In this document: in pieces, positions 1 to 53,150 of the stretch
Position numbering within the stretch: position 1 is the first letter of the stretch
How the letters are laid out: each line of letters starts with the position of its first letter
Made by a program: the position numbers and the translations under genes
Assembly (NCBI GenBank): GCA_964199315.1
Contig: OZ116701.1
Coordinates: forward strand, 19,158,001-19,222,000
Direction: 5' to 3'
DNA: 64,000 nucleotides
Source of the DNA: Orbicella franksi
Lineage: Eukaryota
The notes under the pieces: model-generated
What the model saw: the letters and a program-made list of their open reading frames with translations, nothing else
Told to the model about the DNA's origin: nothing
Databases searched by the model: none

Positions 1-430
1 AGATTGTTTAGTACAAGGCGAAAAGAACATATCAGAAATACTAAACAATGTGCTAAAGGCTCCAATGTAGCGAAACATGCTTGGACCTCTGATCATACCA
101 TCGACTTTAACCATGCTGAGATAATTGACAAAGGCAACAGCCACATTAGAAAGACGCTGGAATCCTGGCACACAGCGAAAACGGCCGAGGACGACAACAA
201 TTCGTGCCCTCTGCCGGGACAATATAACATTCTTTTAAACAAACACTAATTTCACACTTTTAGCATTCTCACATTCTTTCCCAGGTATTCTATTTAATAT
301 ATGCCATTCGCTTGTTATATTCAAAACTTTTACGTCTATTTTATCATTTCATTTTTGTCCGTCGAAGACAGCAGACTGGCTGTTGAAAGCTCACAACTTT
401 AAACAATTTTACCAGAGAACGTTTTTTATC
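1..430 (+). mobile_element. 3' end of a Penelope-like retroelement (GIY-YIG endonuclease C-terminus plus 3' UTR/pLTR)
   Basis: ORF 4-249 (STRRKEH...SNVAKHAWTSDHTIDFNHAEIIDKG...RKTLESWH) matches the C-terminal part of PLE GIY-YIG domains. It is followed by a UTR with the stem-loop motif gtcgaagacagcagactggctgttgaaa. The same UTR recurs at 15241-15411 (minus) and 31278-31459 (plus). Confidence 0.8.
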
Positions 431-1069
431 TCTTTTAATTTATAAAAACTAATTTTTCCAGCAAAAGAGAGCGAAAAACAAATCCCTTCAACTGAGGAGG
501 CTAGTTGGAAATGAACGAATCTCTCACCCCAAGTAAACCAGGAAAACTTTAATTTGCTTGGTCGATGTAGCTGCAAGCAAGAAATTATTCGCGTACTGTT
601 GACCATGATTTCTTCAGCGAAAGTTAGCTAGTCGGACCAACAACGGTATTCCACGAATGCGCAAAACGCGCGTGTTATTTGCAGCTTTGTTTTACCGCCA
701 ATAACAGCTAGAGGACAAGGTAGCCCAGTCATCAGAGGTTTTAACACACAGACCTCAGTCGTACCAACAACGTTTTTCCATGAATACGCCAAATGCACGT
801 GTTATTTGCGGCATGTTCTAGCGCAAACCTGCTTATACTTATGACTGTGATATCATCCGCGAAGGACACCAAATCTTTGTCACTCTCAAACCCTTACGCC
901 GGCATTATCATGGTTTGTAACTGGATTCAGGATTCCCGTGTTAACGAAGCTATTATCAGGTTTAAGCCCTTAACGCCCTAGTAAAACGTACACCCCGCAA
1001 TCTCCACTACAAGCACTTTTTAAAACACTTTACATGTCTGACAGAAGTTTAATTTTTTTTTTTTTACAG

Positions 1070-5240: not shown

Positions 5241-8200
5241 ATGGGGATTTTCATAGTGACGCTTGCAGTGTTTTGGATTCTTTTCACCGAATGGTGGGAT
5301 CATGCACGAGGTGAAGACGTTTGTGTTGCTAAGCGGTTTTTCTTAAAGAAAGCTCAAGGTAAGTCAGTTCAAGTGCAATGTTTCTTGTGAATGAAGTACG
5401 ACATGGATTTCTGTTAAAGGTTAAACACGGTTTTAGTTGCTCCAGACGGTTGCAGTTTACGCAGATGAATCAAGCAACCCTAAGAAATCATTGGCCATCG
5501 ATACAGGCCAATAAAATGAGGGAGGATGAAAATTGAAACACAACAGTATTTCAGTTTCGCAAGAACAGAAAACGAAAAAAGGCTGCCTTGCTTTCTTTTT
5601 AGACTCGAAATTGTTTTGGTTTTGCACGTCATTTTTTTTTTTTTTTTTCAACAATTTAACTAACTGCATGATAAAGATACCGTATACCATCTCAAAAACG
5701 CCTTGTAGTCTTTTTTAGATTCTCTATATCAGCATTTTAATTTGCGGTTAGTTTGAACTCATTTCCAAGCGACCTTCGTAAAGTTCCGTTAAAACAATAA
5801 CTTATGGCACCTGCCCTGGTAAGCCTAATTCCTCCCTTCAACAAATGAAATAGCAGAGGGAAGATCTGTAAGTAAATATACAAAGTACGAGAGATGTACA
5901 AAGGTTCGCTTTCTGTTTCGTTGCTCATCGCAACCTCCTTTAGTTTAACAAACCGTTGTACTGCTGCTTCGTTAGTAGCGAGCTGCTTCGATGAATTTAA
6001 GAGCAAATGTCACCAAAAATCGAGCATAATTTAAATCTGGCGGCAGAAGTCGAAAAATCGATTATTCTCTCTTTTCGTCCACAAATAGCCCTTCCAAGGC
6101 AGATGTGAAACGTGATATAGTTTTTTTGAGCTCGAAGCGCTTTCAATTCGAGAAGACGATTTTCCACTCTACGGTCGCCAAAATGGCAACACGGCAAAGG
6201 CTGAAAAGTAAAAACCTAAACTTAATTTGCGTTTGCGTGTAAAGCGGGAGAACCACAATTTATCGATACTTTTCCTTGAAAGACAAAGTATTCAGCTATC
6301 CAGAACAGGTTAGAACTTGACTTGAGCGCCATTCGACAATAAACAAACAAATCTTCAAAAAATCCCTTTGAGTTACCAGGTCAAATTCGTAATTTACGAA
6401 TAAAATTCAGAGATATTTTTCGACATGTGCCGTAACTTCAAATTACTTGAAACTTTGCCTTTTGAATACTTTAATGTTGTTGTAAAACATGTATTAAGAC
6501 CAGTTTGGATTATTCTTCGAGTGTTCTTTGAGGTCCGGCTGAAAAACTCCGATTTTACCTGAAGCATCACGAAAGGTGACTAGCGCGCGTTGTTCTGAGG
6601 GCAAGCGGGTATCTAGGCGTTTAAAGTCCTTGTATTATTAGTTCTTTGTACTGATAAGCAAATTGCTTCCCTGTACTTATAATGTAAGGGTAAAACCGTG
6701 ACTCAATCTCAACGTCAAAGTAAGTGTATTTCTAAATACAGTTTCTCGCTTTCAATGCCAGACATTTGTGAAGAGGTGTCCATCGGATTCCACACCAAGC
6801 TCTCTTGCGATCTCAAATTGCAACAAGAGTCGCATACTTATCACAACTTTGGTTAAGCCTACTTCGTACTATGTACGACTTCCAGAAACTATTATATTTT
6901 GACGATGGTATTTGTCCTCTAATTAGTTAAATGAGAAGTACGTCTTCGCTCTCCACCAGTTGTCGCCAAATCGTTAGTGAACGCGACCCAACTTTAGACA
7001 TTTTCCCAGGGTGGGTTGTTTACTTAAGAGCGACAGTTTATTTCCGAAGTAAAACATGTTTCCAATACAGTAACCGAAGGCGATCAAATTACATAAAAAT
7101 AACGGTTTTGTGTTATCTTTTTTCTTTCTTTCTCTTTTGTCTTGCCTGGAGACGCTGTGCTGATAAATCACGTGATCAGTAAGTACCAGGTCACCTCGGT
7201 GATCGATTGTGCTCACCGTTGCATACGCGAGTCCAGGTGCGTTTCCTTCAACTACGAGGATCACGCTACATCGCTACGACACGTGTGTCAGATCAATGAC
7301 GAGAAAAAGCAAAAGAACTTTGAAAACTTCATTGGCCTGGATGGTTTCAGTTACTATCAGTTTGAGGTAAGTATTCGAGGCGTCAAAATATGCACACCTT
7401 CAAAAATACGTTACTCTAGGATAATGATGCTATAAAATGCATTACAGTGTAGGCGAAAACAGCCTACGTGAAGATGTCTCCTGTTTTCTTTGCTTTACCA
7501 CATGGGTATAACGCCGCACGGGTCCAGATTAGGACCCGGGGCACACTGGTAGGAGGCTGGCGAGCGCTCTCATCACTACGTCACTCCTTAGTACCCAACA
7601 TACCTTGAACAAGGTTGCTGTTTTAATTTATGATAACATTAGCCGGCCACGATCGGAACGGGAGACTCTAGTTTAAATATAACACCGCTGCCTAACTAAG
7701 AGAGTTCTTCATTCCTCCTACCTCGGGTACGATCTACCTGGCATGTCTGACATGGTTGACACAGACATCACTTTTCAAAAATTTTCTGACTTTTCCCTGA
7801 TACAAATGAAATTTCCCTCGCCAAATGAATACAAAATGTCAGATCTAGTAGAGGCTATAGCCACCCTCTGCATTCGTTCATTAAGACTGGTCATTTTTAA
7901 CTAACAAATTTTCCTTCTTTATAAATTTAAAATATCGCTGAGCAAGATATTATATTCTTCTGCGTTGAGATAAGAGTGACCCCAATGTTTCTTTCAGCCT
8001 TCAATGGTATTTTAAAAACCAGCCGTTTTAAACAAAGACAATCGACCAGTAACTGAATCTCTTTTCTATCTTCATTCTCAGCAGCCTTTCGCATGCTGTG
8101 TTGGTTGTCAAAATGGCGGCACTTGTTTGGAGCAGTGTGACGGAAACCGTAAATGTATCTGTACAGAAGGATACACCGGAGTACATTGTGAAAATATTCT

Positions 8201-13230: not shown

Positions 13231-14496
13231 AGCTCAACAGGAGCTAGCTCGAGTAAGAATGAAGAAGGTTTCCCAAGAGTAATACAGGCCGGCCTCTCAA
13301 ACAAGCAGCTTTTCGCACTACTTTTTTCTAGAAAGAACTATCCCCCTTTCCGCAACAGTGTTGCGTCGCATTTTGAAAACATTATGTCTAAAGATGATTG
13401 GTTTTCTTAAAAGTGCCAACTCTGTCAACTGTATGGCGACGAAAGCGACAGCATATCTGAGATAATTTAATTATTCCTGGAAGATACACGATTTATTTCT
13501 TTGTATCCTACACATTCGTAATGTATTATCAAAAAGACTTTAATTGACAAGTTTGCATCAATAATCATTTTGTTTTTCAATATTGACATAAATCTTCGTA
13601 TATTTATTAATGTTTACATTTCAGTCATCCAGCTTTTGTATATAGAGGAAAAGCGGCTCTTCAGTTGGATATAAGAAATTTTTGGTTCTTTACTAGAGTG
13701 TTAACGAGAATTTTATCTTAGTCTGTTAGGGTCATTTGTGCGGAGCAGCAGACAGGAAAAGGTGCAAACTTGCACGAAAACTGATGACAACTGAGAAACA
13801 TTGAAATTACTTTTAAACTGCAAATTGTGTTTCTCTCTCAAACGATCACACTGCCAGCTGATGAGCTTGGCAATATGGTGATGACATTAAACTGACATTT
13901 AGATGTTCCTCCTCTCATTACAGTTCGTAAAACTGCCATGGAACTGCAATTAAAATATAAACCGACAGTTCACCGCTAGTAACTGTTGGTAATTTTCAAG
14001 GCGGAATACTAAATAAAACTCTTCTTTCTTATTACTAATCGTACACAAATTAACCTCAACGCAGATTTAAAAGAGAACCTGGAATGAATTATCTTTGTGA
14101 CGCTTCCCATGTTTTAGTAACTTGTCTCCCTCAGTAAGTTAAGCATCTGTGTATTATCCTGGTTGGAGCCAAGCAGGTGTACTCATAAATAAAGATATTT
14201 ATTCTTATTGAAATTTTATGTCACATACACTTTGTTTCTTCATCCGCGAACAACAAACCTGCTAAAGTTTAGAGTCTTTCATAGTTAAAATTCAATGAAA
14301 GTAAGTTCCCTTTGTTTTTTATCGACAGTTGATGCTTCTATCTCTGTTATATTAATCCCTCACTCGTCTACGAGTTAGCCTGAGTTCTGCTACAAATAGT
14401 GCATTAGACATATTGCCTCATTTCAGTAAATCACATTTCTTTAGGCGCTATTTTCAAAAACAGTTTCTACTAGTGGACGTGACCTTTGCATGTGAG

Positions 14497-17400
14497 ATGG
14501 GGATTTTCAAAGTGACGCTTGCAGTGTTTTGTATCCTTTTCACCGAACGGTGCGATCATGCACGAGGTGAAGACGTTTGTGTTACTAAGCGGTTTTTCTT
14601 TAAAAAAGCTCAAGGTAAGTCACTTCAAATACAATGTTGCTAGTAAATGAAGTACAACTGGGATATCGGTTAAAAGTTAAACTCGGTTTTTGTTGTTCCT
14701 GGCGGTTTCTTTAAGCAGGAGTTTAATTTTTTTGGTACAATATGAATCAAGCAACACTAAAAATCATTTGCCATTGAAACAGGTCCAATAAACTGACTGA
14801 GAATGAAAGTGTTGCGTCGAAAAAGAACACTTTTTCAGTTTCATAAGAACACGAAACGAAAAACGGCTGCTTTTCTTTCTTCTTAGACTCGAAATTTGGT
14901 TTTGGTTTTGCACGTCAACCTCTTTTCAAGAATTAAACTAACTGCATGGTAGAGATACCGTATACCATCTTGCTAACGGATTGCAGTCGTATAGATTCTC
15001 TATATCAGTATTTTAATTTGCGGTTATAATTTAAACAAACTTCCAAACGACCAAACGACCGCGGGAAAACAATAGCTTATGGCACGTGCCTTGGTAAGCC
15101 TAATATCTCTCTAAACAAATAAAATAGGAGCGGGAAGAGTTGTAAGTAAATTGTAGGAGAAATTTACAAAGGCTCGCTTACTCTTTCATTGCCCATCGCT
15201 ACCTCCTTTCGTTCAACAAACAGTTGTACTGCTATAAAAGGGGTAAAAAACGTTCTCTGGTAAAATTGTTTAAAGTTGTGAGCTTTCAACAGCCAGTCTG
15301 CTGTCTTTGACGGACAAATATGAAATGATAAAATAGACCTAAAAGTTTTTGAATATAACAAGCGAATGGCATATATTAAATAGAATACGTGTGAAAGAAT
15401 GCGAGAATGCTAACATAACGAGCTTTAAGGCGCGAAAAAATTTATGCAAATTAGTCTGACGGTAGATTGAATCTACCGTCAACCAATTAAGACCTGTAAC
15501 ATAAGAACGCAGTTCTCACATTCTCCTGACCAAGAATATAACTGATATAATTAGTTAATGGGATTTTCGGTAACACCTCATGCATTGATAAATTCCCACG
15601 AGCACACGCAGTGTACGTGATAAAACCACAGCGCGAGGATTCTCGTCTAGTTCGCGTGAAAAGTTTTTTTGGAATAGCCGGCCATTCACGCTTTTCTTGC
15701 AATTGAGCCCCTTTCCCTGTTTCAAAGACTAACGTAACATTAAACAAATCACGATAAATTTAAGCAAATACACATCATCAAAGACAGCATAAATTTGTTT
15801 GCGTGCTAAGGGCATTTATTGCACAGTAAAACACCAACAATTCGTGTCGTCATATTGAAATATACCATCGTCCATCAGTCTTGACAGTTCTAATAGGCTA
15901 ATAATACTGAAAGCGAGTTATGGAAAAAATGAAAATTCGTCAATTCATGCTAATCGGCTGGAATTGTTCGCAGTATAACAATGTGTAACAATTGATTGAA
16001 AGTCCCGTGTCTATAGAACAGCAGCAAATTCATTTAATGATGGGCGATTTGGTGGATCGTCAGAGGTTAATTTCTTCGCCACTTTCAGAGAAAGCGCTGT
16101 TGCGGTAGGCAATAAATTTAAAATTTTCAGCGCAATCTTTCCGAAAGAAAAGACATCAGAAACTACACTTTGCTGTCCTTTTCCACTAACAATTTCTGGC
16201 GCGATATGTGGGTAAGACCGCCGGTATTCTTCTTGTGCGGAAGGTGACAAATCCATCAATGGTTTTGGGTTGGCAATGCGTCGCGCTTTCCCAAAATCAA
16301 TAATTACGGGATTCCATTGTTCTCCAGGTTTTTCCAGCACAACGTTGTTTGATTTGATGTCGTTATGAACAACACCGGCTTTGTGCATATGATTGAGAGC
16401 GTCCATTATTTTTTTCAGAATTCCTATCCAAGAAGGCTTGTCAAGTGTCCCCTTTTTGATAACCTTGTGTAATGTTGAACAAGAGTTGTTCTGGCCATGG
16501 AACTGAGTTATCAGTCGCAGCGGCAGTGATTTAGTGATAACTCCAAACAGTAAAGGCAGTCCACGGTGGTCACCGAGCTGGCCAATCATTTGAGCCTCTC
16601 TGAGAACTTCTTGCTTTATCTCATCCTGTGACCTTGACTGCCGAGGCTTAAATTCTTTTACTGCTACCGAAATCCCTCTGTAGTAGGCCAGGTAACACGT
16701 GCCAAAAGATCCACAGCCCAAAAAAATTTCTGATCTCACTACTTCCGAAGGATTTATCTCTTTCAATGGTGCAGATACCCGGGTTCGAGCCTCGTCCGAT
16801 TTCTTGGTTTTGGAGGTTGATCCAAGAACATCTACCACGACCGGGCTTTTCTTTGCTTCACAATGCTTGGCCGGTTTTGGCTCAGCAAAACCTTGCTCTG
16901 GCTCGGGAAGCTGACAGCTCATGGACGGTCGCACTGCTTCGGCAACAACTGCAGGTTTAGCTTCTGACTCGCGAGCAAGCTCAACAGCATTCTTGAGACA
17001 TTTGGCTTTCGCCTTCTTATTCCTCCATCGTTTCTTTGCTTCAATCCGAATGCCTTTCATTTTCTCTCTGTCTACGAGTTTCTTCCGCTTGTTTCTCGCC
17101 ATTCTCCTTGCTTCCAACACCCACAGAAATGAAAGGAGATTGAGACGAGCACGAAATGCAAAATGCGTTCAAAGAGCAGCATACGATCAAATCTTACTCA
17201 GGAGCAAATGCTACAATCATGTTTTCCGGCTCTTATTGATCCTTTGTTCCGGCGTGTGAGAACTATAATCCCTTTCAAAAAGATCGAGGGTCTGCTGTGG
17301 GGTAGTGGGAGTCGACAGTTCTCAAACAAAAAGTTTAGTAAATATAGAAACTGAAGAAATGTGCTGCAAAATTTTCGAGAAAACAAAAACAGCGATCAGG

Positions 17401-20400
17401 AACCCGAAGAATATCATCCAACTAACGTTGCACTACTTTTCACGGCAAAGAGATAAAGAAGTTATTCAGTGCCCCCTCCCCCAATAAAATACTAATTGTC
17501 TGTTCCGAATCATTTGTGTGATTGTGCCAAACTGACAGATGTCATTCCATTTCCCCTACTTGGCAAAGCCCTCTTTTCGCAACACAACATTGTGTATAAT
17601 CGCAGAGCTACATTCAAGATCTGAGTTTTTTCGGGGGCCTTCTTTGGTTAATTTCGCATTTTGGTTTGGAAGTGATGGCCTTAGTGGTATATAAGACACG
17701 CTGTGACCTTTGCCTTTGCTCCTTCAACACAACGGCTGCGCTTCTGCGACACAGACTTGTAAAACACAGCCAAGCGGAAACGGTTTCATATTTGCCCTTT
17801 TACAAAGGCGAAGAAGTCGTACAGCTTCCGCGAACAACCAAGAAAGGACGCAGGTCGGCGACCTATAAAGAATGGATCGGGGGCCTTGTGGATAGCATGA
17901 ATTCCTGTTTACATCCCAAAGCTCCTGGTAAGAGCAATAACAACCCTATAGATAACCTTTGACCAGGCTCTATTTTCGCTTCAATGGTAAACCTTTTCCC
18001 ATGGGAAACGAAAATTAGCGAATTGCGACATAAGAGGACATAAGAGCGATGCTAAAATTGGGCCTGATCGCAGGTTATCCTATAGACGAGATAATAAAAT
18101 CTCTTGCGAAGTAAATCTATGGAAGTGATATTAGATTGAACTATTTGCAGGAATATGGTACTTCCGGTCGAGAAAAAAATACCATCATTGTTTCAATAGT
18201 AGGTACGAGCTCAGGTAATACGTTGAAACGCATTAAAAGTCACCAATTCAAATCGACTCACGAATGAACTCCTCTTTTGGTTTGACCATTTTATTTGAAT
18301 GCATGGGAAGCTTTCAATACTTAATTTAACATACGAATGACATGGGAGACGCACACTTACTAGTCCAAAAGGAGAGCATGATTAAGACTTTTTTCGGGGG
18401 GAGGGGGGGGGGGGGCAGCAGCGAGGTATCAATCCTGCAAGGTTTGGACTCTTATGACTCCTCCTTTACTGGCATTAGGTAAATGGTGTCGCGTGGAAAG
18501 ATATGACGTGCCACAAGAATACTTCCAGGCTATGCTGGCGGATATGCCAAATGCATTCATCAACAGCATACGGGAGAAGAGACATCTACGCCCCCCTATA
18601 TGGAGGGAAACCTCCAAAGTACTGTCGTACAGGGATTATCACATTAGCGATTTGGTTGACGCCCTACAGAAACGGAGCGGCGTAAAACTGCATATAAAAA
18701 AGGCTTACCTGGGAGACGAGGAGATATCTGCATTTACCGAAGAACAAGATGGAAGAACCGCACTTGAAGCAGCCAAAGCAAGGGCACACGAACGTACTGC
18801 GAACAAATTTCCAACGCTTCAAATTCAAATTGTTGTGGGACGTGGTGAAGGAAGGGCTACAAGAGAGTTTGAACTGTTGTGGTGGCCGGAAATGTTCTCG
18901 ACTAACAGGCACGGAAAATTAACACTACGATTTTTTGTGTCGAAAGTAAATTTTTCCTAAAATACGCAATTTCCAGTTACAAATAAACAAGAGGCCATGT
19001 TTATTTCTCGGATATGAGATTGTGAAAAAAGTATAACGTCAAAACACTGTGTAACAAGACGCTACAGATGTTAACTTTATGCAATGACAAAACAATTTGG
19101 TGGAATATTGATGTTTCAGTGGCAGTTCCGAACGAAAATAAAGGAAAAGAAAAAAGCTGTAACTGAGCTGACTACCCGAGAAAGACAGAATAGTTTAAAG
19201 TTAGTTGAAAAGGAAATTATATTCTGCCCTCAGATAACAACAGCTCAAATGAACTGACCACCCAAAAAAGACAGAATAGTTTAAAGTTAGTTGAAAAGGA
19301 AATTATATTCTGCCCTCAGATAACAACAGCTCAAATGAACTGACCACCCAAAAAAGACAGAATAGTTTAAAGTTAGTTGAAAAGGAAATTATATTCTGCC
19401 CTCAGATAACAACAGCTCAAATGAACTGACCACCCAAAAAAGACAGAATAGTTTAAAGTTAGTTGAAAAGGGAATTATATTCTGCCCTCAGATAACAACA
19501 GCTCAAATGAACTGACCACCCAAAAAAGACAGAATAGTTTAAAGTTAGTTGAAAAGGGAATTATATTCTGCCCTCAGATAACAACAGCTCAAATGAACTG
19601 ACCACCCAAAAAAGACAGAATAGTTTAAAGTTAGTTGAAAAGGAAATTAAATCAACAGGAAACAAAAGATAAATTTTGGTGTGAGATAGCAACAGCTCAA
19701 TTTGAACGAACTGCACCGGAGCATTGTCACTGCAAGCTAAACAAACTAAATTTACACGTGGGCCCAATCAAGAATCTGAAGCATAAGGTTTTTCCGATGC
19801 AAGTCCATGTCACTGTATCTCCACGCAAAGCTGTTGATACATGAAGGGCCCCTCTCCAAGAAGTCTCTTGCTGCCATGATAACACCAACTCCACAGCTCC
19901 CAGCACCAATCATCTTCGAATCATTCACTCTTTGATCTGGCATTCCAAATCGTTTGAAGTGGTTGCAGTTTACCCAAAACTTTGTTTGGAGGGTCGCATG
20001 AGATGGATACATAATTGTCAGCAGTTCCAACAAATCTTTGATTGTGGGAAGGGTTGTAAATGGGGGAACATATCTTAGTCCATCATCAAAGTACATTTCC
20101 ATCCTTGACAAATTGACATAAATCAAACCCCAGTGGTTTGGCATATGGACTGGGACTAATATTTGCTGGAGGGTGTTGAAATTCTTCAATTCAGATGCTG
20201 TTCTCGCCATCCACTTTTTCTTGAAATTGATGTCGGGTGCTTTCATCCAGTCATAAAATTCTGAAGGAAAGTAAAGTGTATTGTCATTTCCGTTCATTCT
20301 TGCTTCTTCTAAGTACTTTCCTATGGAAATGTCTATTACAAAACTGTCAATATACCTTTCCAATGCAAGATCTGCAAATGAAGTAACGTCAATACTTTTC

Positions 20401-23400
20401 TTTCCAAACCTAAGGATTATATTAGTGGCTGGTTGGTGCCAAAGGGCTTCCTGAATCCTCACTAAATCTGGTGATGAGCACCTCAACTGGTTGAGCCAAT
20501 TTGCCTCAGAACACACCTTATGTCTAGTATTTGCTATGGTGCAAAACTGTTTCAAAACTGATAATCGACGTTCGGAGAACTGTCCAATACCCACTATGTT
20601 GATACCAGATGGATGGTTTCCCTTATTCGTTTCATCATCAAGAAGCTTTTCAGCTTCCTTGACAACATTTTCACAAGGGCGCATATTCAATGTGAAAGGA
20701 TCAGAAATTGTTGTAGCATCACGAACTGGATGAAGACCAGAGGACGGTTTACTTGATATAGGTGGTATTAGGTTGAATAGTGCAGCCACTTCCGCTCTTG
20801 TGGTGGCTTCATCCATAGAGACACGTAAGGCAGCCTGGTTTGATCCATCAAGTTGCCCTCCTTCAGTGATGGGAGAAAAACAAGAACTTCCACTGACAAG
20901 CGATTCTGCTGACATATCATCGATGGTGTCTTCACAAGTCACCTGCTCAGGTGTTTGGTGACTCTGAAACTCTGGAACAGTATTTTGAGGGACATCATTC
21001 TGCAAGGGAGCACATAAATCGGCCTCTATGTTGGAGACATCTTTGGCAAGACCCTGTGGTGAAGATGTTACATCCTCAATTTTGCAGTCATCAGAGTCCT
21101 CATGCATTTCTTGTTTGGGCTTTGGTGAACTTTGACTTTGGCAATTTTGCATCACACTTGCAGGTATATCATCTCGTTGGTCATTGCCCAAATTAGCGGG
21201 GAACAGGCTTGCAGGAACATCATTTAGCAAGTGAGTGTTGAGAGGGGGTCTTGGTTTACAAAGATTCTCTTTTACACCCTCTCTGATAGATGATTGCTCC
21301 GTATTATTCAGTACATGATTGGCGTATTGTACTTCCCAATAATCATGATCATACTCCAGTAGTCTTGACAAATCTTCATCGCTAACTTTGGTACCATGAT
21401 CAACAGTGTATGTGTATACCAGAAAGTCATTTCCAAACATTTGGCTAAATAAGTCACAAACCATCGTTATCCAGTTTCTTTTCTCCTTTGTCCATGATTT
21501 CATGTCAATGCTTTTCCAGCCACATCCACGGTAAAAAAACTTCTTCTTGCCTAAGGAGGGACACACAATATAAAATCACACTCAGTAAGTAAATTTGGTT
21601 AGCAAAACAACGAACTTCAGTCATGCAGCAAACGCGAATCAGCTGCATATAGCAATGGAGTATAGGACACCATCTCTGCATGAAACAAATTATAATTTTT
21701 CTTCCTTCTTTTTATGCAATTCTGGCTGAACCAGTTTCACACCTGTTCCAGCTCTCTGTGTAAACTTTTCAAATTCAAATACATTTTGATAAAATAAACA
21801 TAAAAAGAACCCTCAACACTAACCTGAAATGATGCATTCCCTTGCTTGTTGGAATGAATACCGCAGTGACAAAAGCATGGTTGTATACCAGTGAGTAAGG
21901 ATTTGGTTCACTGAAAATGAATGGAAATTTTCACTTGCTTGTAGCAATTCCATTTCAACTTGGATGTATTACAACAACAACGAGTAAAGTGGGACTATAA
22001 GGTACATCTACTCGGGTTAAACCGACAAGTCAGAACACAAATATTCAAATTAAAACTCTGCCCCTATGTGACCATTTCAAAAGGCAGAACGTCATGTCTA
22101 ATTTGCAAAAGCTGGAGATAAAGCAGTTTCCATCAACATTAAAATTTGTGTATAAGTGTTATTTTTCAACAATGGAATTTACTGATTGCAAATAGGTGTT
22201 TAGTTGGCTGTCCAGGCATTCTACGACACCATAATGTCAAACATGAATCACTCGTTTCTACAAGGGTAAGGTTAGTTGCAAAAAAAGACTTTTCAATAAG
22301 TTTTTCATGTAGCTGTAAACCATAGCTATAAAGCAATTTTCCATGGTTTCAATAACTAACTTTCTTTTTTTGTTATTTCTACATGTTTAAAATTTATGCA
22401 TACTTACAAGATTGGCCTTGTCCTGAACAATCATGATTTGTGGCCCTGGAATACAACTGCCTGTGTAGCTTGTGTGAAGACTCAAATCCTTGGCCAGAAT
22501 ATTTATATAGGGAACGAAAATGTCGCAACAGCATTGCACTGGGTCCACGACAAGATGTCCGTAGTCCCCTATGCCAAGGTGATGGCCAAATAATTTCTTT
22601 AACAGAAATCCCCACTCTTTGCACTGAAACAAAGACCATGAATAAATGCAAAGTCATCTTCCAATATGCTAAGACAATGGTTGAATGGGAACTTTCACAA
22701 CAATTCCTGATTACTACAGTAGCGGCCCTAGGGATAGCAGCACTTGTGCACAAATACTGTAATTTGGTAAATGAAGGACTGTCACTACTACAAAGGCCAG
22801 CAACTCAGTTACAAAAAGAATACAATGTTTTGAAAGTGAAGAGAAGAAACCTAGAACCTCTGTGTTACCTGGCATAATGTTGGATCACATTTTTTGCAAT
22901 GCCTTTTGTCAATGATACATCAACAGTAGCAGCAATGGTTCTTCATGCCATTAATAACTTAAAATTCTAGTTCCAGCATGGGTATTATTTCCTATACAAA
23001 GAAAAATACAATAAATTTGTAACCCCCTTACAAAAACCCCTGTCTTAAAAGCCACAGAGTATTTTGTTACCTTGACATCATGGATGTCTATCAACTGTTC
23101 CTCATGTTGATTAAATACTTTATCACGTATCGTAAGGGCAATGTCTCTCCAATCACAACAGACCTGAAATTAATATTTGGCAGGGTTGTTATTCAGTTGA
23201 AGACCAGAGCCATGCAAATGGTTTTTTTACAGAGGGGCATGCAGGCATACCTGCAGATCTGAAATAAATCATTATTGCTACGATAAGAGATTTGTAGATG
23301 TCTACTTGTACATGTATGTTTAGGTACTTCTCCTACATACATACACACATAAACTTTATTTCACCTTTGATTTACGGAGTAGCCATAAACACTAATATCT

Positions 23401-26400
23401 CCAAGAAGATAAATGTCCTATGCTACTAATTAACTCCCACTCCCTACTATACAGACATGTACATGTTTACAGCTGATCACAATTTAAAATTTAGTTGGCT
23501 GATATAACATTTAAAATCATGGAGATTCAGGAGTATTCTCAAATTGCCAGGTAGGCTATCCCATGCTTTTGTGGCTGAGTATCTATAGGAGTGTAGGTCA
23601 TAGGCAGTAGAAAGCTGCTCAGGAAGACTGAGAATGTTGGTACCTCATAAAGAATAGGGTAAACACATTTTTAAGTAGACTGGACAATTTGAGATATTTA
23701 GACATTTAAAGAGTACAGTTAAAATGAGCTTTTGCTCATGATTGGCCTTAAAAAAAGCTGGCATTTCCACCTTAGAAAACTTGTATAAGTGAAGGCTAAT
23801 TAACATCTGATTTTAGTATTTCAATCAATAACAGAATGGATCAGGCTTGACAAATCAGACTAAAGGGAATGGTGATAATAATTTCAATCCCTTTTTGATG
23901 CTTAAATGGTAACTGAAATCTTAGCAGCATCATGTTCCTTTCCCAAACTGTGACTACTTCTGAGAACAAATTAAAGGAGGTCTTCAGGCTCACATATTGA
24001 TTAGCTTTGCTTAAAATGGCACTCACTGGTCAAAAATTTTAAAACTGCCTGTAACATACAGGGTAGTACAGCTGTATTTGAAATCTGAACTTCAAATGCC
24101 GTTTGTCTCATAATAATAGTTTACCTTCACAAAAAACTGAATTTGAAGCTCAGCTGCATATGTTGAAAAAGTATCATCTCTGGTGTGTTCTGGTAGCATT
24201 TCTTTCTTCGATTTCCTCCTCTTTTTCTGCTTTGGCTCATTAACTGGCACCTGGCCTTGTGCTAACTCCATGTACCTTTCATCTGCTTCTCTTTGCTTTA
24301 GAGCCCAATACTCTTTATGGTTTTCCAAAAACAATTTAAACTCTAAAAGATAAAACCAGTGCAGATTTAACTTTAAGAAATTTGGCTGTCATAGCAAAAT
24401 GTACACTTTACAAGGGCTTTTTGTTTGTACTATAGACAACTTTTCTGAAAATTCTTTTACAGTAATCTGATTTTTACTCCTTTCGAAAAATTGTCTCTTC
24501 AGGGGTAGGTAACACATATGGATGTATCTTCTGACCAGAACCACAAAGTACACACCACAGTTTTACACATCTTGTGTATAACTTTCCATGTCAAACTGCA
24601 CAACAATAAAGAATTACAACTAAAAGCTAAAGTTTGTTTGCAAGATTAGTACCTTTTGTGTCCTCTAAGTTGACTGTTTCTTGTCCTGAGCCAAGATCAC
24701 GTACAAATGTACCTTTTTGGAGTATCTCATTTATGAACTAGAAAAGGTGAAAATAAGTACTATTAGCTACTTTTACTTTCTATACCAGAACCAATCAAGG
24801 ATTATAGGACTGCATTTGACCCATCAAGTTGTTCTCCAACCAAGACAAAAAAAATTATTTTTCACAGTACAAAAATTTATACACTGTAATATGGTACATT
24901 AGAACTTGATTCATTGTCAGTTTCCAAGTAAAAAGTCAAGACCTACCACAATACGCTCTTCGAAGAAGGTAACATAGCCTAAGATCACTTGTTCTGATGA
25001 ACCACGGTTTTCCTGGAAGTATTTTTTCACTTTTTCAAGGGGTAGTGATCTTTCAACAATTTCCTCAAAATTTCTCAAAATTGCTCTTTCAGTAGATCCT
25101 GTGACAAAAACAAATAAAGGTTTATGAGCTGATTTACATTAAGAACAATATTATTTTGTTATTATGAGAATCCTTTGTCATAACAAAATTGTAATAGTGC
25201 ACACTGGAAATAGGTTACTTAATTCATGTAGACAGCCAGTGAGGCAGTCAATACAGAGACTGTCAATGACTGTTGGTTCAGCTGACAAGAATGCCAAGAA
25301 AAAAAACCTTTAAGATTACTGTACCAATTATTATGCCCTATGGACATTCCTATTTATATTGTATCTTGTTCTGAACTATACCTGAGAATGAGGCCACATG
25401 TATGTTTGCTCTTTCTATAGATGTTTGTTGTCCTTTCCTTTCTTTGACAGTGACACGGGGAAACCCTCTGCAGTTTTCAGGCCCATAATTAGATAAAGCT
25501 TCATTTAACTTGTCGAGGCTTCCAATACGATGGGCAAACAAGCCTAGGGACCCCAAAAGCTGTTCACAGTTCCTCATTTCACAATGCAGAGAACACAAAT
25601 TGACATTACACAAATCTTCCTCAAGAAGAAAGTTGAGGTCTTCTCGAAGACCAGAACCTCTGGAAGATAACAAAAGGGAGGTTGGACCGGTACTTTTTTT
25701 AAGCCTGTGATTGAGCAGTTCATTAGATCTTGTAGAGTGCAATGTATACCAGTGACACATTATATTGAAGGCAACAGAAAAAAAGTATAAATGGTATAAT
25801 AAACACAGCTACTGTAGTTAACTAGTTTGCTATACTTACAAGAGTCTTATAGGATGTTTATGAATTGAACCAAGCCGATAAAACAGATTAAACCAAAGCA
25901 ACACATACCATGCTCTTGGCAGTAAAACAATATTTTAACACACACTGTGCATACCATGTTGCAAATGTGGCCCAGGTTAAGGATGTGTAGAATTAAATAC
26001 ACATATAGTACATGCAGGTACCTCAAAAGTTAACACACCCTCAGAGTCTGGTTATATCAAACTTAAGTAGCTTGTCATGGAAATACTAATTTTAAAGGAT
26101 CTTCAGGATACAGAATTTGGCTGTAACAAGAATGCCTTCTGGAATGTAAGCTTCAGGAATGTACATAAAATAAGCTTTCCAAGTTGGACACATTATTTTG
26201 GCTCATGAAACAGTGATGGTTTTCACCTTGAGATATCAGATATTACTTTTTGTTATGGCCTGTAATGTAAGAAAATATTGGGGAGTATAACGTACAAAAA
26301 AGAACCTTGTGTTCATAGATATGTAGCTAGGCCAAACTATATAGTCATGTAACATTGTTCCAGCTATACATGTGCATAATGATAATTATTATAAGTGCTG

Positions 26401-29400
26401 GAATTTGGTCAATTCAGGGCCTATCCTTTATGTGGGTGAGTTGAACTTGTAATAATTGTGCTTTTAGTTACCTTCCAATGTTAGCTTTTGATCTTAAGCA
26501 ATCTAAACATGCCTCATCGGGATCAGCTCCATGTGATGTACAAGCCTTTCATAAATAAACAGCAAAAGATTTCAAGTTCTAAATATCACACAATATTACA
26601 ATTGGACATAGCTAGATTTATTCACTTACATCTGAATTGTAAGCCAGCAATTAGTCTATATGACATCAATATGAATGGCAGAAGTCAATAATTGTTATAT
26701 TCAATACAATAACTAGGATATGCATACTGTATTTAGAGATATTGTTTACCCTAATAGCATCGCAATAGGCACAACATTCAACATTGTAGCCTTTTCCACC
26801 GAGAGTGAAGTCCTCATCATTTTTCTTATTCAGAAGAAGCAACAGGGCTTTGTAGTCCAGAGTTACTGTAAAAAATTTGTACTTGAGGTGTTAGGGACAC
26901 TTGTACTGATAGCAAAGTATAATACAGTGAGCCCCAGCTCACTTAACACCTCTCACACATAAATGCACAAACATCATACAGAAAAATCAATGTGTTCACC
27001 ACTCTGATCAAAGGAGAGCTTGGAACAGAAGGTCCAAGTTCATTTTGTTTGCATTCAAGATACACATCTAACGGAGTAATCAAAGAATTTTGTAATACCT
27101 GTGAACTTGATTTTGTACTTTCTGCCATCCACTACAATGCCATGTTTTTTAATGCAGTTCTTCTGGGAATTTAGATTTCTCAGGAGCTGCTTTAAATTGT
27201 CTCTAATTTGGAAGTAGAAAAACACATAATAAGTGTACTCAACAACTAGGTTGTCTGCAATGCAATTGCTCACAATACAGAGTCAATAACATTCACTTGA
27301 AATTAAAAAAAATAAGATTGTCAGCATGCAGAAGGCCGACGGGACACCATATTTACTCAAAAAGTGTGCTCCTCCCAGATACGCTACATTAAACAGCCCA
27401 CAAAATTTAACAAGTGCTACAGGGATTTTTCAAGTTTTCAAATGCCCCACATGACTACAGCACAGACCTAGAAGGGTTTACATGCAAATTTACGTGGTGC
27501 TGACATTGACCCAGGCCTTTGAATTCCACAGGAGAATAACACTGACATTAATTGAAAAGGTAATTTAACTTATTTTCTTTATTTCAGTTAAGCACTTAAT
27601 TATTATGACGTGTATGCACTGACCTTTTCTCTTTACAGTTTGCTATAGCAAGTGGGTAGATGGACAGTACACTCTCTGAACTCTTGTTTGCAAAGCCAAT
27701 GGGAGCTACACCCACAGCTACCTGATCTCTGCCTTTTGAACAAAAATATAGGATAAATAATATTTTGCTCCCACATATATAGCTTCTTCAGAATCATAAC
27801 ATATATCAATTCAGTGCCTTAGAGAAAACCTGGCACTGATATATAATATACTTCTGTAAAGATTTTTCTGTATACATAATCCAAACAATGACCATTTGAG
27901 CAATCAATAGTAAAGACAGCTATATCCAGCTCGAAAGCACTGCAGATTACAGATGTCAGGTCTGAATGTCTAAGACAGAAGTCGACAGGCCATTACTGTA
28001 TTTATTTGAATAACTTCCCACTCTGAAAGCCCAAAAATTATGAATTAGCCCCCACACCCACTGACTCCCAACATTGAAGGGGCAGCACCGGTGAATTCAC
28101 TCATTGCCATTATGGATTATGCCATTATTATGCCATTATGCCATTATTATGTGGATGAGATAAAAAAAGTGGATAAGATAGAAAAAGATATAAAAATCGA
28201 GTGAGAAATGTGAACCTGACTGACAATTGCTCAGATTTTTGACCCAGTCAATGGACTTTTATATTGCTTATGCTTTGTTCGTGTTAGCTATTGCACTTTT
28301 TTCCATTATTTTGAAGCAAAATGAACTTGTTGCCCTTTATTTTGTTATTATCCAAAAATTAATGTCCTTACTAACTAAAAATGTTGAAAAAATAATAAGC
28401 GCCCACCTGAAATAAGTGCCCAGCCTTAAGGTCCCAAGACCAAGGCAGTAATTCTAATAAATATAATAGCTACATGGCAATTAAAGGCAAGCCGCAAAAA
28501 CAATATTTTTCTTAAACTTTGGAGTTCAAGGCCAAACGATTGTTTTGACAGCATTTAATTAACCTGTCAATTGTTGTCACAATGGACAAAGACCAAAACA
28601 ACTTGTACACACCTCCAAGAGGACGGCCATCAAGCTTGATATTAAATTCCATATCCTCAGTGTCATTCGAGAAGAGGCGCTGTTCTCGGATGGCCCACAC
28701 CAGCACTGCACTTAGGTCTACATCACATGCATCAAAATCAGCATTCATCCTGTCAATCTTCAATGTTTTCCTCACAACAGAGAAGATAAGCTTCTTGATG
28801 GCTCTGATCTCATTTTTCGTGAGCAGCACAGGTGTATCATCAGATTTCTTAACAAGATGGATATAATTGTTAAAAAACAAAAATTTAAACTATAGCATAA
28901 GTTATCCTACTGTACTAATGAAATTCGACGGACACACTAAGTCTTGCTTGAAACTGGCAGGCAAATTCTCCTGTACAAATTAATGTCAATGATTGAAATG
29001 GAAATCTTCAAACATGCTCTTTTCATCTTAAAATACAAAACTTACAAACTTACAAAACTCAAACAACTGCAGTGAAACTCTATTATTCAATAACCTTGAG
29101 CAGCAAACTGTACTATGTGTTTGAGTGTGTACTTGTTTAAAAACAAACCAACTAGGCCGCATGACATAATGATTTTGTAAGAGGGAACAGGGCGGGGATG
29201 ACTAATTACAAAATCTCATGTTTCAAAAGGGGTTGGGAGGCTTATTAGAGAAGGGGAGCTTATTACAAAAACCAACTTTCAAACAGGGGGCTTATTAAAA
29301 CCAGGGGTTGTTGACAGAGATCGGGGCTTAATAGAACTTTTACATGTACTACTTCCTTATATATACATGTACGAGGGCTGTTCTGCAATAATATGTAATT

Positions 29401-32400
29401 AAATTTTTTTTTAAAAAAAGTGATAAAAACGATGTACAGGTGATCATTCACAATCATCAAATATTCCTCAGTAATTTATATCGTCACCTTAAGTTAATTG
29501 ATTTAATTAAGAAAAGAAATAAAATTAAGTAAGAATGTATACTCACTCCACTCTTTCCAAGCTGCGTCAAATTTAGCAATGTCTGCCACGCCGAGTCAGG
29601 AAGCCTTGACTGAAGCTTAAAAAACAAAAGCGCCCAATCTGGAACTCTCATGGATTTCATAATTCGCCCATAGGTCGACGATGATAAGAGATCAGATAAG
29701 CCTTTCTTGGGACCCTTGGCATCCAAGACCATATCCACGACCTCGGAAATTGTATCTCTCACTTGCTCTTTCTCGTTTTCATTTCCGAAGATAAACCCGT
29801 TCCCCAACACAGAAGATACTGACTCACGATACTTCTCACTGACGTCGTTGAGGGAAGCCATCACCTGACTGCATTGCTTTGCTATTTGCCTCTTTTTCGT
29901 CGTCGATCCTAGTGGACTGCTTTTAATTTCTTCAATTGAACTGCTGCTTGTCGATGGGGATGTTGGCGATGATCGACCCGAACAAGTCAGCGATTTCGTA
30001 GACTCTGGAGAAGATATTGATAGCGAGATGGAATCACCCAGAGTTTTTTCTTGTACTTGAGACTGAAGATTTCTTATCTCGGCTTGGAGTGCGTCCATCT
30101 CAGCCTTGAGCGACTCGATTTGGATGTTGCTCTCGAGTTGATCGAGGTAAACCATTTTCCCGCCAGAATCAACTTTGCTCGGCGGCGTCAATGGCTCCAA
30201 ATCAAGGGTGATAGAATTTATAATTCTTGCGACCGACTGGAAGGAGGGCGAACTGATCAGACCATCAGCTGGAATTTCCCTCTGTCTTAACAGACCAGCA
30301 CATAGGCCAAAAGACGAAGCCACGCATAAATTTCTTGGCTGTCTGTTCCATCTCGATAAATTGGCGGGCTCGAGTTCGCGCGAAGCGATTACTTTGACTT
30401 CATCGGGAAAAATCTTAAATACGCCATTCTTTAAAAAGTCAACTGGTCTCGTTCCCCCACATAGTTCTTTCGTCAAAACATACCAATTCTTGTGCGGGTC
30501 AAGGAACGCGCTTGTGACCCGTGCAAGACGCGTAGAGCTGAACTCCGATGGCACTGGAGGAGATTGTTCTTCCTCCATGCCGGTGCCGTGGATGATGTCG
30601 AAATAAAATACATCATTGCTTTGAAACTTAAATTTCCCGCCTGAGTAAAATATTACCACTGCAGTCAACATTTAACTTTTAGACCCCGAGTGGTACCTTC
30701 GTGTTAATGGCGACGTACAACAATGGTAATACGTCACCTTACGCATCTATCGCGCGTTACGTGGTTGAGCGTGACACATTCTTACGAGGCAAAGCGTCGC
30801 GTGGAATTAGTATCGCTTTGCAATCCTTTATTTGCCATTTTGATTCATAATTTGCCTTTTAAAAAACGCTGGGATGTTTCCTCTTGAAAATGTATCGCAT
30901 GTATACAATCATGCTAACTGATGAGCAATATCCTTCGTATAGTACAGACCATGACAGATATGACCGGACATTGCTCAGATCGCAAAGAGCTGAACTTCGG
31001 TCGCTTGATTTATAAAAGGTTTTCGGTTTTTGAAAAAGCACCAATCGTCAGTCTCCGCTTTGCACGCGTATTCGCGAGGCTTTTTCTTCCATCCTCGCAC
31101 AGCTGGTCATCTAGTGAGATCTACTTTATCGACCTAATCCAAGAGACTAATTAGTCGGCAAACACCTCTTCACCGTATGTTAAAAGACATCTTATGTCAT
31201 GTAATTACAAAGTTTGAATGGTTACAGATCATCTCCCGAATCCTGTGGTGATTTTTTTCTTCCGATAAAGCTCGTTACACTTTTAGCATTCTTGCATTCT
31301 TTCACACGTATTCTATTTAATATATGCCATTCGCTTGTTATATTCAAAAACTTTTAGGTCTATTTTATCATTTCATTTTTGTCCGTCGAAAAAAGCAGAC
31401 TGGCTGTTGAAAGCTCACAACTTTAAACAATTTTACCAGAGAACGTTTTTTACCTCTTACAATGAATCCTGGTATCACATCTTCAATATTTTTAAGTTGT
31501 ACTGCTGTTTCATTGAATTTAAAGCGTTTTTCAAATCCCCTAGTAAAGAAGTATAAATACTGTCGCTGCACCGAAGCTAAATAAGCAACGAAAAAATGGT
31601 CATCCATGCCCTTAATTTTTTTGTGGAAGGTCCTAAGGTCTATATTTTTGGTCGGGGATCGTTTTTTCAACACCAACAAAAAAGTTAATACGTATATCAA
31701 TCGGCTCAGCTTGTTTTATGTAAATTCATGGTCTTCGCAATGCGATAACATCGTAGCTCTTAGAAAAGCAAAAGAAATCACTGCCCAGAGTCAACATGAA
31801 CACTGACTTGCAACCAAACGCTTCCAACAAGCCGATAACGAATCACAATTTTTCGCAAATAAGGGAAGGCGTTAAAACTCAAAATTAATGTCTTTTTTGT
31901 GTTACCTGGAGACGCTGTGCTGATAAATCACGTGATCACAAAGTACCAGGTCACCTCGGTGATCGATTGTGCTCACCGGTGCATGCGCGAGTCCAGGTGC
32001 GTTTCCTTCAACTTCGAGGATCACGCTACATCGCTAAGACACGTGTGCCAGATCAATGACGAGAAAAAGCAAAAGAACTTTGAAAACTTCATTGGCCTGG
32101 ATGGGTTCAGTTACTATGAGTTTGAGGTAAGTCGTCGAGGCGTCAAAATATGCACACCCTTTAAAAGACGCTACTTTAGGGCAATGATGCTGTAATATGC
32201 ATTACAGTATAGCCGAAAACGTAGCCTCCGTGAAGATGTCCCTCGTTTATGCATAACTCATTATATCACTCTTTTAATAGCTCAGTGGACTTATATGGTA
32301 AAATTTAACAAATCTAGACCATTGTCAATGAAAATATGTCTGTCTTTTACGTTTGACCCCGTCGAAAGTTTGCTTGTCCCTCTAAGCTTCTAGCATTACT

Positions 32401-40995: not shown

Positions 40996-42244
40996 ATTAT
41001 CAATCAAGCAACCCTAAAAATCATTTGCCATTGAGACAGGCCCAATAAGGATGAAAGTGCCGCGTCGAAAAACAACAGTTTTTCACTTTCACCAAGAGCG
41101 CAAAACGAAAAAAAGACTGCCTCGCTTTCTTTTTAGACTCGAAATTGTTTTGGTTTTGCACGTCATCATGCTTTTTTTTTGTTTGTTTTTTTCCGAGAAT
41201 TTAACTAACTGCATGATAGAGATACCGTATACCATCTTACTAACGACTTGCAGTCGTATAGATTCTCTATATATCAGCATTTTAATTTGCGGTTATAGTT
41301 TAAACAGATTTCAAAGGACCTTAATTAAGTCGCGGGAGGACAACAGCTTATGGCACGTGCCTTGGTAAGCCTAAAATCTCCCTAAACAAATAAAATGAGA
41401 GCGGAAAGAGTTCTAAGTAAATGTAAGCGAAATTTACAAAGACTCGCTTACTTTTTCATTGCCCATCATTACCTCCTTTCGTTCAACAAAACATTTGTAC
41501 TGCTGTTTCGTTAGAACCGAGCTGCTTTTTTGAATTTAAGACCGAGTTAACAAGAGGACCAGGCAGGGGTGATACATGCCATCTCTCCTTTTTGGATGAA
41601 ACTTTGCCAGATTGAAGGTACTACCCAACAACTCTAAACGATAAAGTGGGCCGGCTTTGTGATTTTTCCCTTAGGAGTTAGACCACCCCCCCCCCCCTGG
41701 TTTTTTGCCCAAAATCCCAAAAATGTCACTACAATAAGCATTAAATTTAAACATCGCTCCTGCTTTCAGAATACATTGAATTTTGTTGGTATTTAAACAA
41801 ACAAAGATTGGACCTATCTTAGGTCACACCAGGAATTTCAAGTCATTTGAAGTGACAGGTGCCAATCAAGGAATGTTATTTCCTACCCATGTCACGTAAC
41901 ATTTAGCAATAAGGCAAATTAGTTCAAATTCTGACTCAAATATTGCTTGAGTCCAACTTTCTAAATCAAAACTAATTTCATCACAGTTTAGAGTCACCCT
42001 TGGCCTGATAAAATCAAGAATAAAATTTTTGGCATCTGTTAGTGTTTGGTAATAAAAGTTGTTCAAACAACATGACAAGAGGCTAGTTTTAACAAAGAGA
42101 CAAGGGCGAAATCTAAAAATATTAGATATTATAGAATCAGTTTATCAAAGTTATTTCTATGTTAATGTCATTAACAAAGTCTTTGAATATTATATAGGGC
42201 AGTGGAAGCTCAATGAATGCAAAACTCTTTGTAATATCTCGTAA

Positions 42245-42817
42245 CCCTCGGACGTACAAGAGGGGGTGGGGGATAGATGTCATCCCCCCAATAAGGTATT
42301 TTCAAAATTTTGAGAAGACGATTTACTCTAAGGGGCTGAAACTTTCATTAGCTGTTTATTCATCCTTCGTGGATATTTTGATATGTCAATTGTGTGTCCA
42401 TCATTTTTATGTTTCATAGCAACCACTAGTTTCATGTAGGTTTGACCGAAAATCAACTTTTTTGACATAATTCTGTATTTTTTCCAGTCTGGTTCATCAA
42501 ATTCCAGGAATTTACCAATTTGTACATTTCATAAGCATTCTGGCTTGATTTTGTATCAATTTCCATTATTTCTTGACTTTTTAAGAAAAAAGTAAAATCC
42601 AAGATGGCGGATCCACGATGGCGGGTCAAATGACATCATTTGCCATTATGACATCACAGCCATTGAATATGGTATCATTTTTTAGAGCAAGCTCAGGGCT
42701 ATCTAATCAATGTAAGTTTAGTAGGCTGTGCGTTAACAGAACAAAAACCAGAGGGGGTTCCTTCCATTTCCCCTTTATACCACAGTGGGGGTACGAGTTA
42801 GCTTGTACGCCAAAGGG
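42245..42817. mobile_element. 573-bp piggyBac-type MITE within the left TIR
   Basis: gtaa-ccctcggacgtacaag ... cttgtacgccaaaggg-ttaa: CCC..GGG ends with TTAA on one side. Confidence 0.7.
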
Positions 42818-43779
42818 TTAAATAACAGTGCAAAACACCTAAATTCTATTTGCACAATCTAAATATGGGAATGAACGGCCGTGATGTTTGAATTCTAAAA
42901 CATTGACTAGTTAGATGAGAGTTTTTCTCGGCATATCTTGCTTTTGAGATTACTCTTGAAACCCTGCTCAATCATCACAGGTCAAATACTTAATCTTGCA
43001 ATTGATTGATGTCACCTCTTACTTTACACTCGGCATATAAACTCATCAATCCTGAGAAGAATTCTTTGCTGAAATTATTGTTTGCTCTCATTCCGAGTTC
43101 AAAAAACCCTTGAAATTTTCATTTTGCTGCATCAGGCAAGCAAGTAAATCTTGGTAAACACGTACAGTTGTATATAATACTTGAACTGTAAGATCGAGCT
43201 TTAGCTAGCTTTTATGAAAATGCGTTTTTCTTCTGAAAGTTCCCATACTGAATTAACCGCAGATAAAGGTTATACCTGAAAGATGTTAGCACAAAACATT
43301 GTAAATAATCGCATGTCTGCGAGTAAGAAGATGTGTGAAAAAAAATGCAATTCTGAGGAAAAATTGAGCTTCAAGAAGATCTAGAAGCTGAAATTATCTA
43401 AAACCTAGGGTCCAAGCGAGCACACATGACAACATACACGGCACCAGTGCCTTAGGTTTAGCAAGGTTTGGCTCGGTTGAACTTTTTTAATTTTTCTAGG
43501 CACTCAAGAAGCTTGATTGGCTCTTGGCCATCGTTTTCTTTTCTGCTCAGTAACCTCCTGTGTATACCCGTAGCTCCATAGCCCTGTGAAATAACTGATT
43601 TGTTTTTTTCTGGTCACAAGACTGTGTTACATATTCTACATGGTGGATGGTAAAGTAGTTGGCAAGTAGTATTGTCTTCGTACTGCAAGCCTGGTCAAGA
43701 TCTCTTCTGCTTCATCTTGAGACGGACTCAGATCAGCCTGGTGTATAGCTAGTCGGCCACTTCTGTACATTACAGACAA

Positions 43780-52972: not shown

Positions 52973-53150
52973 ATAGACAACTCTTTCTATGGGTTTACCG
53001 GCGCAATAAACCACTTGGGATGTTGGGAGAACACGAGAAAAGCTTGTAAATTACTCGCCCAACGGCTCGTGATTTACAAGCTTTTCTCGTGTTCTCCCAA
53101 CATCCTGCGTGGTTTATTGCGCCAGTAAACCCATAGAAAGAGTGATCTAT
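52973..53150. repeat. ~180-bp palindromic (fold-back) MITE
   Basis: ctctttctatgggtttac..gggagaacacgagaaaagcttgtaaat / atttacaagcttttctcgtgttctccc..gtaaacccatagaaagag. Confidence 0.8.

Follow-up and report, generated by a model that had tools for sequence, protein, structure and literature searches.

A 16.3-kb insertion at positions 15222-31506 of a 64,000-nucleotide stretch of the Orbicella franksi genome (GenBank assembly GCA_964199315.1, contig OZ116701.1, positions 19,158,001 to 19,222,000, forward strand; hereafter the window) is best read, with a probability of roughly 85%, as two successive nested insertions, in which a Penelope-like element (PLE) first left a short palindrome made of two copies of its tail and a DNA transposon later entered at the centre of that palindrome. 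Both nested elements are of known kinds. The sequence-only reading of this stretch had put forward two models, namely that a small inverted PLE insertion was later split by a large DNA element, or that PLE ends had mobilized the whole intron-containing cargo as a single composite retroelement. The first is supported, with an interior that is an independent multi-copy element and flanking arms that are older than its arrival, and the second, under which a retroelement would, remarkably, have moved 16 kb of cargo with introns, is excluded. The remaining interest of the locus lies in the dyad-centred position of the inner element and in the duplication-free, ragged integration of what is predicted to be a RAG1-fold transposon.

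The outer boundaries of the insertion are real. The 12-bp sequence AGTTGTACTGCT occurs exactly twice in the window (chance expectation ~0.01), at 15222-15233 and 31495-31506, and these two matches are the left and right copies of the PLE target-site duplication at the outer edges of the insertion, as had been claimed from the sequence. The surrounding host region belongs to a local tandem family with four paralogues on the same chromosome (76-82% identity), two of which lie inside the window; both of these hold a single copy of the AGTTGTACTGCT site, at 5954-5965 (paralogue 1) and 41493-41504 (paralogue 3), followed directly by the host sequence that is found after position 31506. Because the paralogous units hold one site copy that runs straight into downstream host DNA, the duplication and the boundaries at 15222-31506 are established, and with them the earlier statement that host sequence resumes after the right duplication. 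There are no runs of N in the region. A search for a young paralogue of this host site with the PLE alone returned only the four old local paralogues, of which the two in the window have no PLE at the site.

Comparison of its copies indicates that the interior (15414-31277, 15.9 kb, with genes mostly on the minus strand) is an independent, multi-copy DNA transposon with ends of its own. Collinearity among the three full copies (window, C8, and C9) extends over 15.84-15.99 kb, with identities of 98.7-99.1%, and a further copy, C10, is older (91% identical), truncated and interrupted, and retains the left end. The inner edges of the PLE arms, 15414/15416 on the left and 31277 on the right, are exactly the points where homology among the copies ends, and the C8, C9, and C10 copies lie in unrelated flanks from which PLE sequence is absent; since other copies share its ends in PLE-free surroundings, the interior is independent of the PLE. 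The ends are formed by 14-bp terminal inverted repeats, CATAACGAGCTTTA at 15414-15427 and TAAAGCTCGTTATG at 31264-31277 (plus strand; four left and three right junctions compared), which extend to 25 nt at 80% complementarity. The sequence-only reading had seen no CAC..GTG terminal inverted repeats at the inner boundaries, which is correct as to type, the termini reading 5'-CATAACG... and not the 5'-CAC of the recombination-signal heptamer, but 14-bp terminal inverted repeats do exist. A search for further ends or short derivatives with a 19-nt terminal pattern (up to two mismatches) returned the known copies and two chance matches without further homology. The other copies, which the sequence-only reading had suggested inspecting for their ends and flanks, have the same end points, their own terminal repeats, and no PLE flanks; none of the three full copies has a target duplication of its own.

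The same copies decide against a composite element. In favour of movement by PLE ends, retention of introns and retrotransposition of host genes in trans have been reported for PLEs (Craig et al., 2021, PMC8557442). However, two full copies and one partial copy elsewhere end at the same terminal repeats within PLE-free flanks, the cargo boundaries are the terminal repeats of a DNA transposon, and the arms are inverted, whereas a single RNA template would give a direct arrangement, which together leave this model with a negligible probability.

The outer shell, in turn, is the standard insertion scar of this PLE family. The arms, at 15238-15413 and 31283-31458, are 176 nt long and 97% complementary, and both match the 3' end of a PLE copy at window positions 260-469 with 86-93% identity, confirming the inverted repeats with similarity to a PLE 3' untranslated region (UTR) that had been noticed earlier. 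The left arm (15234-15413, minus strand; C4:19173238-19173413 in the genome census, tail positions 6-181, 97%) is a 5'-truncated 3' UTR in short-tail form, with its 3' end facing outward and covering tail positions ~182 to 6. The right arm (31278-31494, plus strand) is also a 5'-truncated 3' UTR with its 3' end outward, in long-tail form, and carries a tail extension of 36 nt (31459-31494) that the left arm lacks. The genome census, with the right arm as query, found at least 44 PLE tails that end at two fixed points, the short form stopping after ...CTCTTTTA and the long form continuing into a conserved 35-36-nt extension common to at least 25 other copies. The "35-nt extra tail" described on the right copy is therefore present, but it is the regular long-tail form and not a one-off oddity.

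Outward-facing inverted PLE pairs are common in this genome. At least eight other head-to-head pairs have 8-14-bp duplications at their outer ends, and in four of these eight the duplication is 12 bp, the commonest length among pairs of the family in this genome. A long tail is combined with a short or intermediate tail in nine pairs, comprising seven of the eight duplication-bearing pairs and two others. On C5, the arms of one pair are separated by a single base and form a bare palindrome, and a second pair listed on C5, 137 kb away, looks like a duplicate of it. The reference PLE copy (1-445, plus strand) contains the end of a reverse transcriptase (RT)/GIY-YIG frame, with its stop codon at 247-249, followed by a short-tail 3' UTR. 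This copy at the start of the window (1-457, locus L028) is itself half of a head-to-head pair with the 12-bp duplication TAAAAACTAATT, the long-tail partner lying just upstream of the window (C4:19157669-19157884). The arms of several inverted pairs (this locus, L028, and L038; among L017-L045) start at tail positions 1-6, a few bases past the stop codon, which suggests a preferred 5' end of the copied RNA; a ribozyme was not detected at that point.

The PLE identity of the arms follows from the sister copies, in which the tails run upstream into the end of an open frame, together with the motif and the nearest relatives of that frame. The 284-aa C-terminal frame contains a GIY-YIG-type motif (VYKIPC..C..YIGET..R..EH), and the Atlas clusters closest to it are "Reverse transcriptase family" and "GIY-YIG/HTH_animal" (score 0.94); Pfam returned SegE_GIY-YIG only, below threshold (E = 0.16). 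An inverted, 5'-truncated copy adjacent to the insertion has been described for PLEs, as has a tail of 30-40 bp, often present at one end only (Craig et al., 2021, PMC8557442). In vitro, both target strands are cleaved and extended by the PLE enzyme, and reverse transcription begins at two start sites whose spacing corresponds to the tail (Frangieh et al., 2024, PMC11167929). The locus shares with these endonuclease-bearing PLE insertions the outward 3' ends, the pairing of one long and one short tail, the target duplication (12 bp here), and arms that match the 3' end of an RT/GIY-YIG-type frame. It differs in that both arms are cut to nearly the same point, 5-10 nt past the stop codon, so that the insertion is a tail-only palindrome, and in that no hammerhead ribozyme was detected in the tail by Rfam, either in the window at the gathering threshold or in bases 1-600 at E <= 10, though minimal hammerheads can escape such models. 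Integration of the PLE at AGTTGTACTGCT thus took the course normal for its family, with cleavage of the target strands 12 bp apart and each strand priming a cDNA, and it produced two outward-facing, 5'-truncated copies of the 3' UTR (176 and ~181 nt) from the long-tail and short-tail start sites, joined head-to-head in a near-perfect palindrome of ~400 bp. The locus is a clear coral example of the long-tail/short-tail rule in PLE integration.

That the palindrome came first is argued statistically from private substitutions. At tail position 17 both arms have G, as against A in 34 of 35 other copies, and this shared derived base indicates that a single template gave rise to both arms and that they were identical when formed. 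Since then, the arms have accumulated 3 + 3 private substitutions in 352 nt (1.7%), with an additional 2-bp indel and three changes in the long tail (9 in 393 nt when the long tail is counted). Across the interior, in a three-way alignment of the full copies, the window copy has 70 private substitutions in 15,804 sites (0.44%), compared with 0.38% for C8 and 0.31% for C9. Per site, private substitutions are ~4 times as frequent in the arms as in the interior (odds ratio 3.9, Fisher p = 0.006), which argues that the palindrome is older than the transposon insertion. The same figures bear on a single-event alternative, in which the 5' ends of the two cDNAs were linked through an excised linear transposon during PLE integration, so that all 16.3 kb arrived at once. 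Such capture would place the element centrally without any targeting, would exploit the two ends made available when PLE enzymes cut and extend both strands (PMC11167929), and would suit an element that looks end-joined at C8 and C9, but it leaves the excess of substitutions in the arms unexplained, as a divergence of 1.7% is not plausible from reverse-transcriptase errors, and it is accordingly improbable.

The gene that would mobilize the inner element lies on its minus strand. A 395-aa frame (29487-30671), which aligns with the N-terminal parts of the proteins P0060, P0078, and P0079, is probably the N-terminal exon. It is followed by nine exon-like pieces of the transposase core within 21822-28889 (28515-28889, 27599-27787, 27058-27282, 26669-26890, 25353-25808, 24920-25138, 22954-23169, 22390-22804, and 21822-21968), which are collinear with the anthozoan proteins P0061 and P0068, and by the last large exon (19755-21575, 607 aa), which has an Ulp1/SENP (C48) protease domain at its end (PDB Ulp1 1euv, E = 6e-6). 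The Actinostola gene model P0061 is collinear with the minus-strand pieces from 28889 to 21822 and then with the Ulp1 exon, so that the gene is a transposase-Ulp1 fusion. All homologues named for the 19755-21575 frame are uncharacterized by name and anthozoan, from Montipora and Actinostola, and a search with the transposase core added homologues in Oculina, Pocillopora, Acropora, and Paramuricea.

With database proteins (P0061, P0069, and relatives) standing in for the spliced window product, an AlphaFold model of the anthozoan homologue P0069 was based on an alignment of 14 sequences; its pLDDT averages 61 and exceeds 80 in much of the region of residues 250-500. A Foldseek search with this model returned only RAG1, the amphioxus RAG-like protein BbRAGL, and the Helicoverpa Transib HzTransib in its top 46 ranks. 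The family alignment also contains the motifs DGRP, LDYK, C-x2-C followed by A-x-R, ALHxE, and GFExSHK, which we take to resemble the motifs of the RAG1 catalytic core and which serve as a lead. On this structural lead, the inner element is a putative RAG1/Transib-fold element. It is not filed as a member of Transib, because neither the 5-bp target duplication nor the CAC termini are found. As in Transib and the RAG-like ProtoRAG, it has short terminal inverted repeats that start with CA, and the transposase of a homologous element has a predicted fold resembling RAG1/Transib, whereas its own termini read CAT.., a 5-bp target duplication is missing from all three copies, its transposase is fused to an Ulp1 protease, and at 15.9 kb it carries a kinase and a C2H2 gene, with no RAG2-like gene seen. 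At both ends (15414-15450 and 31240-31277) the 7-mer CATAACG is followed by a spacer of ~14 nt and an A-rich 9-mer, an arrangement that loosely recalls the heptamer-spacer-nonamer of recombination signal sequences. A perfect subterminal palindrome, GACGGTAGATT / AATCTACCGTC, lies at 15458-15480, 45 nt inside the left end, and has no counterpart at the right end.

The manner in which the inner element joins its targets is unusual for such a transposase. DDE strand transfer keeps the terminal bases of the element and generates a target duplication. Target duplications of 2, 4, and 5 bp were sought at all three full copies, and none was found. The C9 copy sits in a satellite array with a period of ~210 bp (L003 1-1500 and L008 2079-3578; C9:261312-262811 and 278799-280298), where intact monomers read ...CTTTCAG-TC-TTAAAG... 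and the element replaces TC, so that 2 bp were lost and nothing was duplicated. The C8 copy sits in a dispersed repeat, more than 15 sisters of which hold 444-1030 bp (mostly ~780 bp) between the same flanks, which implies that target DNA was lost at this site too. Two of the six termini are ragged: the window right end lacks the last two bases (TG in C8 and C9) and is followed directly by the PLE sequence CAC..., and the C8 left end reads AC, as opposed to CA in the other copies. As two adjacent terminal substitutions are very unlikely at 0.4% divergence, these ends were probably trimmed at joining. With three young copies lacking a duplication, two of them showing target loss, and two of six termini nibbled, the pattern is closer to what end-joining would give when an excised linear element enters a break.

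This raises the possibility, which is tentative and at present improbable on balance, that the RAG1-fold family does not carry out staggered strand transfer at all, and that a precisely excised linear form is re-inserted by host end-joining at breaks or cruciform tips. If true, re-insertion of this kind would explain the lack of duplications, the loss of target DNA, and the insertion at a palindrome centre, and it would represent a natural analogue of the re-inserted signal-ended fragments of V(D)J recombination. The ~780-bp stretch missing from the C8 site (locus L064 2100-2879) begins with CACTATC, a heptamer that presumably resembles Transib and recombination-signal ends, perhaps by chance.

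The position of the inner element within the palindrome is unusual. With the left arm ending at tail position 6 and the right arm beginning at position 1 (or -1), the original centre can be reconstructed as a stem of 9 bp or more, GAATGCTAA / TTAGCATTC, continuing for ~176 nt and closed by the 5-nt loop CACTT. The element lies at the stem-loop boundary of this centre, at most 5 nt from the dyad. With only three or four insertions in 497 Mb, one of them falling so close to such a centre is not credibly due to chance. The arrangement resembles nested transposable-element insertions generally in having a younger element inside an older one, but random nesting would almost never place the younger element, as here, at most 5 nt from the dyad of a ~400-bp palindrome. 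Long palindromes are prone to cruciform extrusion and to breakage at their centres. In the second step of the proposed history, the 15.9-kb cut-and-paste transposon entered at this point, and its excised linear form was most likely end-joined into a double-strand break at the palindrome centre.

Capture by such a break is slightly favoured over attack on a cruciform tip, the close runner-up. In that account, which implies the same nested order, the palindrome would have extruded a cruciform, and the transposase itself would have inserted one end of the element, or both, where stem and loop meet. The location of the element at the boundary of the GAATGCTAA / TTAGCATTC stem and its CACTT loop, the RAG1/Transib-like fold of the P0069 model, and the very low likelihood of a random insertion within 5 nt of a centre in 497 Mb all speak for tip attack. 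There is also a biochemical parallel, since RAG transposition into hairpin and cruciform tips has been observed in vitro (Posey et al., 2006, PMC1618415). The two situations share an enzyme of RAG1-like fold and, as the point of entry, the tip of a long inverted repeat, but the coral case is a natural germline event, known from a single instance and read from sequence, in which one end is trimmed and the target duplication is absent. Strand transfer would have retained the terminal TG that the right end lacks, a 5-bp duplication is missing, neither the C8 nor the C9 target forms a significant hairpin, and there is one case only, so that tip attack is the less probable of the two accounts.

A family that reproducibly preferred palindrome tips, or that spread by break capture, would bear on target choice by RAG-type enzymes and on the taming of transposition. 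To our knowledge, natural examples of the RAG preference for hairpin tips are scarce.

Several observations weigh against the nested history or against parts of it. The age comparison draws on six substitutions, and with such small counts it is good evidence and not proof; palindrome arms could, in addition, mutate faster than ordinary DNA. The hairpin potential of the C8 and C9 targets is not significant (z = -0.7 to -2.1), which implies that structure targeting is not a general property of the family, and the missing target duplication is documented at two testable sites only. The Foldseek matches of the P0069 model have E values of 4e-5 to 2e-2 with low TM-scores (0.2-0.3) and come from a model with a mean pLDDT of 61, and RAG1 was not found by sequence, as searches of Pfam (20 frames and proteins) and PDB (two exons and P0061) gave Ulp1 and kinase domains only. 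Finally, the arm-to-element junctions are bridged by none of the listed public contigs and are thus known from the assembly alone, though these are Logan contigs, which break at repeats.

The last point leads to the question of whether a copy of the 15.9-kb repeat was misplaced inside the PLE palindrome during assembly. Most words of the left junction region are present in 20 public runs from 10 studies, whose labels include coral metagenomes, and contigs from four of these (X1, X10, X19, and X20) were compared with window positions 13800-17300. A 701-nt contig of run X1 (14571-15271) bridges the host and the left PLE arm. At each of the five window-private sites in 15414-17300, the base in the contigs is that of C8 and C9 in all four runs, and in run X10 the left end of the element is joined to a flank absent from this assembly. 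These contigs, together with the unbridged junctions and the known tendency of palindromes to cause assembly problems (PMC8557442), could be taken to indicate an artefact. However, the 68-70 private substitutions of the window copy are spread evenly along the element, which makes it a physically distinct copy, its junctions are precise on both sides, and one of its ends shows a trimming unique to it; moreover, Logan contigs drop minority variants as well as breaking at repeats, so that their silence is not evidence of absence. Misassembly is therefore very unlikely. For the same reason, the run contigs hint at insertion polymorphism without proving it. The ratio of element depth to host-flank depth also differs among the four runs, and together with the bases at the private sites and the X10 flank this gives a hint that colonies or species differ in copy number and in insertion sites.

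Further features were noted inside the transposon and elsewhere in the window. The inner element carries a 385-aa protein kinase frame at 16014-17168 on the minus strand (Pfam Pkinase, E = 9.5e-29) and, at 17600-17959 on the plus strand, a frame with one weak C2H2 zinc-finger match (Pfam zf-C2H2 families, E = 0.03-0.11, under the curated cut-off). An 86-bp tandem repeat of 5.7 copies at 19164-19649 differs in copy number among the three full copies. Outside the insertion, paralogue 3 of the host region contains a separate insertion of ~7 kb (41541-48533), only ~35 bp away from the counterpart of the PLE target site. This insertion has TTAA at both flanks, terminal inverted arms of 1447 nt (99%), and an internal 195-bp tandem array at 44899-46758, and it resembles a DNA transposon that targets TTAA and has long terminal repeats. 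Additional short inverted repeats at 52969-53154 and 55719-55911 (91-92-nt arms with 4-9-nt spacers) and at 58737-59804 (146-nt arms separated by 776 nt) are possibly MITE-like or small repeats that form hairpins.

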